Part shown: piece after piece, positions 19,601 through 36,446 of the stretch
Layout: each line of letters starts with the position of its first letter
Position numbering within the stretch: position 1 is the stretch's first letter
NCBI GenBank assembly: GCA_964247055.1
Contig: OZ176054.1
Coordinates: 7,378,001-7,442,000, forward strand
Reading direction: 5' to 3'
Source: Paragordius varius
Taxonomy: Eukaryota > Animalia > Nematomorpha
Length of the DNA: 64,000 nucleotides
Notes under the pieces: generated by a model
The model's input: the letters and a program-made list of their open reading frames with translations, nothing else
Database searches by the model: none
Told to the model about the DNA's origin: nothing
Program-made: the position numbers and the translations under genes

Positions 19601-20145
19601 ACATCGATACAAAACTATTAATTGCATTCCTTACATATAATATATTTTTTAACTTTAAATCCTTAAAATATGCCTAATTGATTCCAGATTTAAGCTATTC
19701 TATTTTATACATTTTACAACAACATTTTTACGGTATGTATAATAGGTTTGGTAAAAAGGCAGTTCCATTAACATCTCCTATTAGTAAGGATATGAATTAC
19801 AAAAATTTACAAGATTTAAGTGCTCTGACACAGGCAAATGACCAAAATTTAACACTGTCAAACACTCACACCCCTTTTTCTATACCACAATCAAGCGTCT
19901 CTCAAACCAAAATTGAGATTGAAGAAAAAAACACTCATGCATTTCTTTCGTTTCCGGCTAAAAATGCAGCTTATGCCACCATTGTCCTTAGTGAATGGTG
20001 TAAGGAATTGTCAACTTTGGCTTCGGAAATGTCGATAGCACTTTTGATAATTTTACAGAGTACTGCCACAGCGAATATCATCCCTTTTCCCCTCAACAAC
20101 AGATTGGAAAGGGTTTCGCTTAAGGACGATGGCAAATCGCTGTAA
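7692..20145 (+). CDS. FHIP1: FTS and Hook-interacting protein FHIP1 (FAM160A-like), multi-exon
   Basis: Phase-consistent exons: 7692-7717 and 7942-8014 (tentative), 8516-8629, 8654-8827, 8852-9113, 9191-9288, 10074-10232, 10788-10874, 11426-11540, 11887-11948, 12034-12113, 13111-13270, 13677-13914, 14466-14657, 15528-15632, 15778-15939, 16022-16084, 16846-17024, 17119-~17684, 18147-18341, 19746-20145. Motifs match FAM160A as I recall it: QLKIYQILL..HKPILRPLL, GQLARNALL, TSTAYLE, LVDLNCEDIM..RYLIPCNH, GPFLTTIL..FPCPLLQSILLN, KNAAYATIVLSEWCKEL. Confidence 0.92.
10384..10635. mobile_element. Small MITE-like element in an FHIP intron
   Basis: Imperfect terminal inverted repeats cacaggcttagcttg / ctagctatgcctctg, with GC-rich subterminal gcgccc motifs around an AT-rich core. 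Confidence 0.45.
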
Positions 20146-21095
20146 AAATTATATCAATTTTACGAAGAAATTACATGGTAATTAAAAGATTATAGCTGCT
20201 TTTGAATATTATTTTGTATTAAAATTTTAATTTTTATTTATGTTTATTTTTGTTAACTTTACCATTATACTACGGAAATTTAAGAGTTACACAAAATTTA
20301 ATTAAAGATGGTTTTAAATTTATTTTTGTTAATAAGACATATTTTTAAATAGATCATTATTTTTTCATAATATGTAATGTTTTAATTTTAGTTTAAGTAT
20401 TATGATAAAATTTAGGAAATTTCATATAACATCGCCGAAATATTAAAAAAATAGATATTGAGTGTCTGACAAAAAAATAAATTTATTTTTTAAATATTCG
20501 TAAAATTACAAATCCCCATTTTATCTGCAATCATTTCAGATTTGTGAAGATATGAAGATCATGTGTTTGAAGCGTTTAATTTGACCCACACCTGATATTT
20601 CACCAAAAAAAGATTGGATGAAAAAATTCAAAAAATTTGCTAACATCAAGAAAAATGGTTAATAATGTTGGTTTATTATATGTTATGTTTTTTTATTTTT
20701 TAAAGACGTATATAATCTTCTTGCACCTTGCCATATCAACTTATGCAATCACAATTTATTTATATTGATAATTATTTATTATTATTGATATTATTCCAAG
20801 CAATAATTAGTAGGCATATATTTCTTATTATATGGCATTTGACGAAATTATACTCGCTGTAGTGTATAATGTTTATTGTACAAGACAAAATAAATTTATA
20901 TTTTATTCTAATCAAATATTTTATTAATTACAACTAATTTTATCAAGTTTTAATATACATCGGTCGTTTTTTATAATGGCTGCTGTGATTAAGCCGACAT
21001 TGATTTAACTTGAGTTTATTAAATTTTCAATATTAAAAATAGAAAATGTTTGCAAACGTATTATGGATGATTATTATAGTGCACTGTAAGCAAAC

Positions 21096-21379
21096 ATAAT
21101 ATTAATTGTAATAACAGTTGTTAAAATCCGTAATATAACGATAAAAAATCGATATGTGAAAACCCCAAGTCAAATAATTGTGTCGTACTGATGAGTGCTA
21201 ACAAGCACGAAACTAGTCTGCGATTACTATTGACGAAGGGTTTCACATATCGTTTATAATTTCTATTTATAATTTCATTTAATTATATTTAATTATCCTT
21301 TATCGTTATATTACGGATTTTAACAACTGTTATTACAAAACATAACCAATCCGTTAATTACCATTATAATATTAATTGT
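21096..21379 (+). mobile_element. 270-bp inverted-repeat insertion with 14-bp target-site duplication, containing a hammerhead ribozyme (Penelope-like/retrozyme-type remnant)
   Basis: Direct repeat ataatattaattgt at 21096-21109 and 21366-21379. Perfect 38-bp inverted repeat at 21107-21144 / 21300-21337. The paralogous site near 35770 has one copy of the target and no insert. Confidence 0.85.
21183..21223 (+). ncRNA. Minimal type I hammerhead ribozyme
   Basis: TCGTA (stem I 5') - CTGATGA (21188-21194) - GTGCT aaca AGCAC (stem II) - GAAA - C TA GT (palindromic ACTAGT mini stem III) - C21218 (GUC cleavage triplet) - TGCGA (stem I 3'). Stem I extends outward via gtcaa/ttgac and cgatatgtgaaaaccc/gggtttcacatatcg. 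Confidence 0.88.
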
Positions 21380-21406
21380 CATTGATTAAAAAGATAAGGT
21401 CCAATA

Positions 21407-22053
21407 TATACCATTTGTACTTCAAGAGTGTCCTTGAACACTTCAAGTTGGTCTTTGAACATTTCAAGTTGGTCCTTGAACAATTCAAGTTGGTCCTTGA
21501 ACAGTTCAAGTTGGTCCTTGAACAATTCAAGCTGGTCCTTGAACATTTCAAGTTTGTCCTTGAACACCTTAAGTTGGTCCTTTGACTTTTTTGTTTTGTT
21601 TTTAATTTTTATCAATCAAATCGTAAAAAATTCATGTATTTTATTGTTTTTAACCTATTTTCTATCATTTACATAGATTTTAAATCGATATCAACTTTTA
21701 ATCTTTGAGAAACCGTATATCTTTATTGATTTCTTAAAATAATTTTGGATATTTATAAGATTTTAACACGAAATGAAAAATATAAAAGTTTTTTGGGTTA
21801 TTAATTAAAATTTTTCATTGAAAACATTTAAAAGTCAATAATTTTGTTCAATTGAAAAAAAATAGTTTGAAACAAAAAAGTGGTTTTTCAATAAAAAAAT
21901 TTATTTTTAAATGAATAAATATATAATAAATAAAAAAAATTAGGTTAATAAATAATAAAATTAAAAAATAAATGCAAAAATTATGGTTAAATCAAAATTT
22001 TTAAATTTTAAGGACCAACTTGAAATGTTCAAGGACACTTTTGAAGTGCAAAT

Positions 22054-34792: not shown

Positions 34793-36446
34793 AAATTATT
34801 TCAATTTTACGAAGAAGGACAATGTCACATATGCTTTTTTATTACATGGTAATTAAAAGATTATACTGCTTTTGAATATTATTTTGTATTAAAATTTTAA
34901 TTTTTATTTCTGTTTGTTTTTGTTAACTTTACCATTATATTACGGAAATTTAAGAGTCACACGAAATTTAATTAAAGATGGTTTTAAATTTATTTTTGGA
35001 AAATAGTTAATATTTTTAAACGGATCATTATTTTTTTTATATAATGTTTTAATTTTAGTTTAATAAATTAAGCCATAACGATAAAATTTAGGAAATTCCA
35101 TATAATATCGCCGAAATATTAAAAAAATATTGGACGTATGACAAAAAAATAAATTTATTATTTTTAAATATTTTTCGTAAAATTAAGAAAACCCCATTTT
35201 ATCTGCAATAATTTCAGATTTATGAAGATATGAAGATCATGTGTTTGAAGCGTTTAATTTGACCCAGGACTAATATTTTACCAAAAGAGATTGGATAAAA
35301 AATTCGGAAAAAAATTTCTACATCAAGAAAAATGGTTGAATAATGTTGGTTTATGTTATGTTTTTTTTATTTTTTAAAGACGTATATAATCTTCTTGCAC
35401 CTTGCCATATCAACTTATGCAATCACAATTTATTTATATTAATAATTATTTATTATAATTATTATTGATATTTATTCCAAGCAATAATTAGTAAGCATAT
35501 ATTTCTGATTATATGGCATTTGACAAAATTTTACTCGCTGTACTGTATAATGTGTATTGTACAAGACAAAATAAATTTATATTTTATTCACAACATATTT
35601 AATTAATTACAACTAATTTTATCAAGTTTTAATATACATTGGTCGTTTTTTATAATGGCTGCTGTGATTAAGCCCACTATGATTTAACTTGAGTTTTTTG
35701 AATTTTTGAATATTAAAATAAAAAAATTTGCAAACGTATTATGGATGATTATGGTGCACTGTGAGCAAACAAAATATTTATTGTCATTGATTAAAAAGAT
35801 AAGTTATAATATATTCACTGAGAGTATCTTTCAAAGCGTGAATTTTATATTCAAACATATGGAATAGGTATAGTGACGACAGTTGAAATTTTTACAGATT
35901 TTACGCATTCTTCACTAACTATCAGTGAGCCTTATTTTTATGATTAGCGATTTAACTATATTTCTACACAGATAAGATTTCGGGGATGACCCATATTTTT
36001 GTAGCCATCTTTATAGGGTGGAGCTAAACAGAGAGTTTATTTAAAAAGTAGGGAGAACGGAAAAATCCCCCAAAGACACGATTTTGGGGACTTAAATTTT
36101 TTACGAGCGAGAAACTTAGTGGTTAATCAAAAGTTCGATTAACTTCGGCGCACACATACACAAGTATGCATAGCCAAATAAAATGGACATACGCATTTTC
36201 GCAAAATTGCTTGAAAAAGATGATTTTACTCTTTTAACTACTCTTCGAAGGAAAGGGGATAAATTTTTGTTTTCATATCAACCCAATTATGGCCCTTAAG
36301 TTGGGAACTATATATTGTACTTATATGAACATTGATTTTGCCCGATAAAGGAAGCAAAAAATTTATATTATAACTTTAGCCAAAAATCTTGTTTTCATTT
36401 ATTTAATTTGAAAAGCAATATTAATTTATTTTTTTAAAAACTCTAG

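Follow-up and report, generated by a model that had tools for sequence, protein, structure and literature searches.

The window analyzed here, a 64,000-nt stretch of the Paragordius varius genome, contains at positions 21096-21379 a hammerhead ribozyme that is carried by a long hairpin, is bordered by direct repeats and lies downstream of an FHIP-type gene. Such an arrangement could be read as an RNA rod native to the element, as a foldback DNA transposon, as a processing signal that the host has taken over, or as the copy of a retroelement. The question is which of these readings accounts for the locus and, if a mobile element is involved, what machinery copied it.

The insertion, its empty site and its ribozyme

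The 14-mer ATAATATTAATTGT occurs at window 21096-21109 and again at 21366-21379, at a spacing of 270 nt, and a preliminary description of this DNA, which took the pair for a target-site duplication around a mobile insertion, was right in this respect. It had also fixed the boundaries by an empty paralogous site near 35770, and these boundaries stand: when the 270-bp insert is excised, the locus aligns without gaps to its paralog across the insertion point (90% identity over 216 nt), and the paralog holds a single 14-mer. The empty site is supplied by a local duplication of ~90% identity (window 20925-21420 versus 35600-35815), the homology of which stops ~20-35 nt past the insertion point. The features of the locus, as they emerge from the comparisons presented below, are the following.

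Window 21096-21109, no strand: left copy of the 14-bp target-site duplication (direct-repeat search; mock-boundary control)
Window 21110-21145, minus strand: short inverted 5'-truncated arm of 36 nt, reverse complement of 21299-21334, with complementarity that extends 4 nt into the duplication
Window 21146-21365, plus strand: main arm of 220 nt, the 5'-truncated 3' half (block A) of a ~444-nt unit, without the ~217-nt block X; identity to other copies 94-98%
Window 21147-21255, plus strand: hairpin native to the element, bearing the ribozyme at its tip (arms 21147-21164 and 21238-21255), found in all block A copies
Window 21178-21227, plus strand: type I hammerhead ribozyme (Rfam HH9 match, two-family model, covariation with a second family)
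Window 21339-21365, plus strand: 3' tail of ~27 nt, carried by the main arm but not by the inverted one (arm comparison)
Window 21366-21379, no strand: right copy of the target-site duplication, the first ~7 nt of which also match the element's own continuation (microhomology)
Window 35771-35784, no strand: empty paralogous target site, a single 14-mer identical to the duplication at 12 of 14 positions (alignment)

The 284-nt stretch folds as a rod of -98.6 kcal/mol (z = -13 against shuffled sequences), in agreement with the earlier statement that most of the 270-bp insert forms one such structure. Two nested inverted repeats had been noted, one of 15-16 bp and a perfect one of 38 bp; both exist, although their lengths had to be corrected, the inner repeat measuring 18 nt at 89% complementarity (window 21147-21164 with 21238-21255) and the outer one 40 nt at 100% (window 21106-21145 with 21299-21338), with the outer 4 nt lying within the duplication.

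The catalytic core is complete, as had been described, with CUGAUGA at window 21188-21194, GAAA at 21209-21212 and GUC ending at C21218. Helix II (21195-21199 with 21204-21208, loop AACA) has the 5 bp initially assigned to both stems, but helix I (21182-21187 with 21219-21224) has 6 bp, including two G-U pairs. In the place of helix III stands the palindrome ACUAGU (21212-21217), already recognized as a mini stem III. Given the order of the core elements, namely CUGAUGA, helix II, GAAA, ACUAGU and C, the predicted cut falls after C21218. Beyond helix I, a small internal loop is followed by a distal helix and then by the 18-nt inverted repeat.

An Rfam scan, one of the checks initially proposed, returned a single hammerhead match, HH9 (RF02275), which lies at the ribozyme (window 21178-21227; E=0.004) but whose 24.6 bits are well under the gathering score of 52; other copies of the family described below score 21-27 bits against the same threshold. 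The core, helix II, the 6-bp helix I and the sequence UAC 3' of helix I are common to HH9 and the window ribozyme, whereas helix III of the latter is 5 nt shorter. The alignment accordingly shows a 5-nt gap at the position of the HH9 helix III, and it is mainly this missing helix that accounts for the shortfall in score. HH9 itself is a conserved single-copy motif of amniotes and not a repeat. A model built from the two hammerhead families of this genome gives 95.2 bits at window 21166-21240, a match by construction. The assignment of the ribozyme to the animal hammerheads with minimal helix III that act as dimers is upheld: the canonical animal type I form combines a 6-bp helix I with a helix II of 4 bp and, as helix III, 1-2 bp plus a small palindromic loop (PMC4209133; PMC7229834).

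A dispersed non-coding family

The host genome of the window (110.6 Mb in 44 contigs) contains 111 matches to the insert, at 92-98% identity, out of 458 first-look candidates, and at least 127 ribozyme-bearing copies, so the unit is not the solitary one it had been thought to be. The exact ribozyme pattern matches 127 times and a looser version 174 times; the reversed control patterns match 0 times in both cases, which rules out a chance motif. The further copies and tandem arrays for which a genome search had been recommended were thus found, in the form of dispersed copies and of tandem and head-to-head loci.

Most copies match block A only (window 21146-21372, 227 nt) and begin at insert query position 37 or 51. 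The complete family unit is ~444 nt long and consists of block A, which bears the ribozyme, and block X of ~217 nt; in three tandem loci (L028, L013 and L021), successive A blocks lie ~444 nt apart with block X between them, and head-to-head pairs are common among the family loci. The unit has 26% GC and no stop-free stretch longer than 61 codons, and nothing beyond it is common to the flanks of the compared family loci, which together identify a short non-coding repeat and not a part of a coding element. An autonomous Penelope-like element has a single ORF with reverse transcriptase (RT) and GIY-YIG domains, and the unit has none; having no ORF, and with nothing shared beyond its ends, the element can only be non-autonomous.

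When the unit was mapped onto 28 family loci (numbered so that u1 is window 21146), the main arms proved to start at variable positions and to end at u213-233, that is, with a variable 5' end and a near-fixed 3' end. An inverted arm, 23 to ~690 nt long, adjoins the 5' end of the main arm in about half of these loci. The outer ends of the inverted arms fall mostly at u171-193, ~30 nt short of the end of the main arm, so the tail is present on the main arm alone. Direct repeats of 13-16 bp flank 14 of the 28 loci; in a mock-boundary control, the same direct-repeat search did not reach 13 nt in any of 600 trials. At the remaining loci, roughly a dozen and mostly without an inverted arm, no convincing duplication was found except at L007 and possibly L029. 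L007 arose by an independent insertion: its duplication, of 16 bp, is a different one, and its 23-nt inverted arm ends at the same unit position as that of the window copy. The 5' ends show no enrichment at the cleavage site among the 28 mapped loci; the DNA copies therefore give no sign of 5' ends set by the ribozyme. Taken as a whole, these loci represent a retroelement family that is dispersed, duplicates its target site on insertion and carries a structurally supported hammerhead.

These layouts bear directly on the shape of the window copy. The preliminary description spoke of a long hairpin insertion, but comparison with other loci shows that the element does not natively have this shape: most copies are devoid of the left arm, and the 40-nt arm corresponds to a short inverted 5'-truncated copy, as in Penelope-like insertions. 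Because the window copy fits the layout of arm, tail and duplication seen throughout the family, the long hairpin is a scar of insertion and not a designed RNA rod; the extended helix I and the inner 18-nt repeat alone form part of the element's own structure. The unit-length RNA, from cut site to cut site, has a moderate fold (z = -4.5). The same comparison leaves a negligible chance that the locus is a miniature inverted-repeat (MITE) or foldback DNA transposon merely carrying a hammerhead-like sequence, for which the perfect 40-nt, terminal-looking inverted repeats, the flanking direct repeat and the rod fold (z = -13) would otherwise speak. Terminal inverted repeats at both ends are not a feature of the family, the left arm being altogether missing in most copies and ranging widely in length where it is present, and the ends are asymmetrical since the right one runs ~27 nt past the repeat. 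Furthermore, duplications of 13-16 bp are, to our knowledge, longer than those of known cut-and-paste families. Judged by sequence identity, the insertion happened recently: the two copies of the duplication do not differ, the arms match at 100%, and the identity to other copies is as high as 98%.

Ribozyme covariation, predicted dimer cleavage and the host gene

The genome also contains a second non-coding hammerhead family, whose ribozyme differs in its helices: GUGUGA/UCACAC in helix I, GUCC/GGAC in helix II and ACGCGU in helix III. Three of its copies, located by a pattern scan, are given here.

L045:3578-3653 (C5 3.207 Mb): second-family copy
L046:4174-4249 (C2 14.441 Mb): second-family copy
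L047:4104-4179 (C1 3.529 Mb): second-family copy

The second family is more heterogeneous than the first; a general pattern yields ~47 genome matches beyond family 1, mostly to the second family, and head-to-head arms occur here as well (for example, L046 3484-4361, 97% self-inverted). A differing hammerhead-like pattern with a longer helix III region appeared once in a loose scan, at C1:12267181-12267217 (plus strand), and may be a chance occurrence or a third type.

In an alignment of the two families, 96.7% of cells pair, compared with 20-45% when the partners are slid. Both sides have changed in 5 of 14 pairs, across all three helices, the covariation amounting to effectively one event per pair because there are only two families. 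At the center of helix III, UA in one family is replaced by GC in the other, a compensatory change that keeps the palindrome, as the dimer cleavage model predicts. This pattern of covariation indicates that the hammerhead of the window is a real ribozyme. Copies of family 1 vary less in the ribozyme region than elsewhere in the unit (1.2% versus 2.9%; p=1e-6), which is suggestive only as a sign of a real ribozyme.

In animal type I hammerheads whose helix III consists of 1-2 bp and a palindromic loop, cleavage is poor in the monomer and efficient in the dimer (PMC4209133; PMC7229834). When two copies of the ribozyme are cofolded, the intermolecular ACUAGU helix is used (-6.2 kcal/mol for the duplex alone), so by this modeling a dimer helix III is feasible for the ACUAGU ribozyme. 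In multimeric transcripts of the family, two ribozymes would pair through the ACUAGU palindrome to form a 6-bp helix III and, so paired, would cut after GUC, releasing a 444-nt unit RNA with 5'-OH and 2',3'-cyclic phosphate ends. A tRNA ligase may then circularize the unit RNA, by analogy with other animal retrozymes in which this has been shown.

The position of the window copy, as previously noted, is ~1 kb downstream of FHIP1 on the same strand, more precisely ~950 nt past an FHIP-family last exon (ORF 19678-20145, with a KELAA motif). On its other side, a 21-nt tandem repeat of about nine copies spans window 21400-21600, the minus strand of which encodes KDQLE(L/M)F heptad-like repeats (ORF 21379-21615); the stop of this ORF abuts the right duplication, which places the insert immediately after the end of what may be a coiled-coil gene on the minus strand. 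Location on the strand of the FHIP-type gene and an intact ribozyme core might be taken to mean that the host has co-opted the insertion as a self-cleaving signal in the FHIP1 3' region. We regard this as very improbable, given the youth of the insertion argued above, the absence of the insert from the paralogous site, the dispersal of the family over loci whose flanks share no sequence, and the near inactivity reported for a lone ribozyme with such a helix III (PMC7229834; PMC4209133). Trimming of FHIP1 read-through RNA, in particular, is unlikely for a lone ribozyme whose helix III needs a second copy. Nothing suggests a host function of the window copy. It comprises half a unit with a single ribozyme and is most likely a relic of little or no activity, not a signal for FHIP1 processing.

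Penelope-like elements and known retrozymes

The genome encodes proteins of the kind that could copy such an element. ORFs that join an RT to a C-terminal GIY-YIG domain, the defining layout of endonuclease-bearing Penelope-like elements, gave at least 59 matches, belong to several families and reach 788 aa. The three listed here include intact frames of up to that length.

L041:5349-7712, minus strand: Penelope-like RT + GIY-YIG ORF
L042:7044-9317, plus strand: Penelope-like RT + GIY-YIG ORF
L043:5592-7046, plus strand: Penelope-like RT + GIY-YIG ORF

Three copies of one family are head-to-head pairs whose arms share 98-99.8% identity; only one arm bears a 30-nt tail, and the duplications measure 12-15 bp. 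The other Penelope-like families in the genome are 31-67% identical. Intact ORFs in pairs up to 99.8% identical point to recent activity. In the inspected Penelope-like copies, which represent one family, no hammerhead was found by Rfam at E<=1, by a minimal-hammerhead descriptor that recovers both hammerhead families as controls, or by the model built from these two families. Penelope-like elements whose endonuclease is C-terminal do not usually lack a hammerhead. Comparison of the unit and its tail with the one inspected Penelope-like family, 3' end included, likewise gave no significant similarity. The search for a GIY-YIG/RT partner, as initially advised, thus had a divided outcome: RT + GIY-YIG elements are present in the genome, but the family inspected neither carries a hammerhead nor resembles the unit.

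When ribozyme pattern and ORF coordinates were compared by eye, a ribozyme was found next to a Penelope ORF in a single case, L005 (1493-2312 and 2554-3174), where ~240 nt separate a family-1 insertion, flanked by a 13-bp duplication of its own, from a fragment of a decayed Penelope-like RT. The separate duplication and the decayed state of the neighbor rule out a pseudo-LTR at this locus. Elsewhere, at L044:1038-4838 (plus strand), a 1267-aa open Ty3/gypsy-type pol ORF (protease, RT, RNase H and integrase) adjoins a decayed Penelope-like fragment.

According to Craig et al. (2021, PMC8557442), Penelope-like insertions are strongly 5'-truncated, form partial tandems, adjoin an inverted copy that is itself 5'-truncated and bear a tail of 30-40 bp at one of their ends; the hammerhead family shows all four traits. 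Since scar and dimensions are the same as those of the Penelope-like copies, we infer that a Penelope-like enzyme copies the family in trans, architecture being the only basis of this link. It is unlikely that the retrozyme was moved instead by a LINE or by rolling-circle reverse transcription of circular RNA. Rolling-circle copying would fit tandem multimers, for instance L028, where an inverted arm accompanies ~2.4 units, the unit has no sequence in common with the inspected Penelope-like family, and the first description of animal retrozymes named them 'non-LTR' (PMC7229834); on the other hand, the 3' end has neither poly(A) nor a microsatellite, and both tail and duplication agree in length with their counterparts in the Penelope-like copies of the same genome. 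In addition, the inverted arm repeats content of the main arm, unlike the non-overlapping products of LINE twin priming, which is ruled out as the source of the inverted arm by this overlap.

According to the mechanism that we favor, the RT + GIY-YIG enzyme of a Penelope-like element would copy the hammerhead element in trans. The enzyme would make a staggered break of ~14 bp, both ends of which would prime cDNA synthesis near the 3' end of the RNA, and the two truncated cDNAs would be joined head to head; in the window, this joining would have given a 36-nt arm and a 220-nt arm, and hence the long hairpin. Thus, the feature in the window is, very probably, a truncated copy of a non-coding hammerhead retroelement that was copied in trans by a Penelope-like enzyme, the best explanation of the evidence as a whole. 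A more specific proposal is tentative and, in our estimate, rather unlikely to be correct: that a retrozyme with a canonical type I hammerhead is copied by a Penelope-like family with a C-terminal endonuclease that has lost, or never had, a hammerhead, and that the insertions record Penelope integration, with both ends of a ~14-bp break priming ~30 nt apart, which would produce the inverted arm and the tail on one side. If this were so, the numerous small and young insertions would preserve a natural trace of the Penelope integration step, for which there is as yet no explanation.

The preliminary description suggested that the element may represent an undescribed short family. Its kind has already been described, as animal non-LTR retrozymes or non-autonomous Penelope-like derivatives (PMC7229834; bioRxiv 10.64898/2026.07.22.740005); the window copy by itself is an ordinary repeat copy, and the family is of modest value. 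Hammerheads in Penelope pseudo-LTRs were described in 2014 (Cervera & de la Pena, PMC4209133) and animal non-LTR retrozymes in 2020 (Cervera & de la Pena, PMC7229834). The present family resembles the latter in having a type I hammerhead (helix I of 6 bp, helix II of 4-5 bp, helix III of 1-2 bp with a palindromic loop), in being short (150-450 bp), AT-rich, non-coding and often tandemly repeated, in making target-site duplications of more than 4 bp, and in having a ribozyme for which dimeric action is predicted, as for those of newt and axolotl (PMC7229834). Its 444-nt period and 26% GC place it within this size and composition, the window copy being half a unit. In contrast to those retrozymes, the family, which is known from DNA alone, occurs mostly as small dispersed insertions of 0.5-3 units and not as long arrays; inverted arms, a tail and a 3' end that hardly varies set it apart as well.

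With Penelope-like elements (PMC4209133; PMC8557442), the family shares 5' truncation, partial tandems, the adjacent inverted truncated copy and the ~30-nt one-end tail, as well as paired hammerheads on opposite strands 100-700 bp apart and a palindromic helix III. It differs from them in having no RT or endonuclease ORF. Moreover, the hammerheads of Penelope pseudo-LTRs are of the 'min-HHR' form, in which helix II is long and helix I short, whereas the form found here is the canonical animal one, and the RT + GIY-YIG copies inspected here are without any hammerhead. The palindromic helix III is retained in both ribozyme families of this genome, as expected under dimer cleavage.

The closest parallel as regards mobilization is offered by vertebrate retrozymes, which Li, Clavereau & Pollet (2026) consider non-autonomous Penelope derivatives, arguing from homology in Xenopus, with non-vertebrates outside their study (bioRxiv 10.64898/2026.07.22.740005). 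In both cases dependence on Penelope-like enzymes is proposed, and retrozymes and Penelope-like elements co-occur in one genome; the host here differs in having an AT-rich genome of 110 Mb. The vertebrate case is based on homology between retrozyme and pseudo-LTR, whereas here no such homology was found and the basis is a common insertion scar, comprising tail, inverted arm and duplication length. The link between retrozymes and Penelope-like elements, so far argued from vertebrate sequence homology, would thereby be extended to a non-vertebrate host and would gain an independent kind of evidence, namely identical insertion scars in the non-coding and coding elements of one genome.
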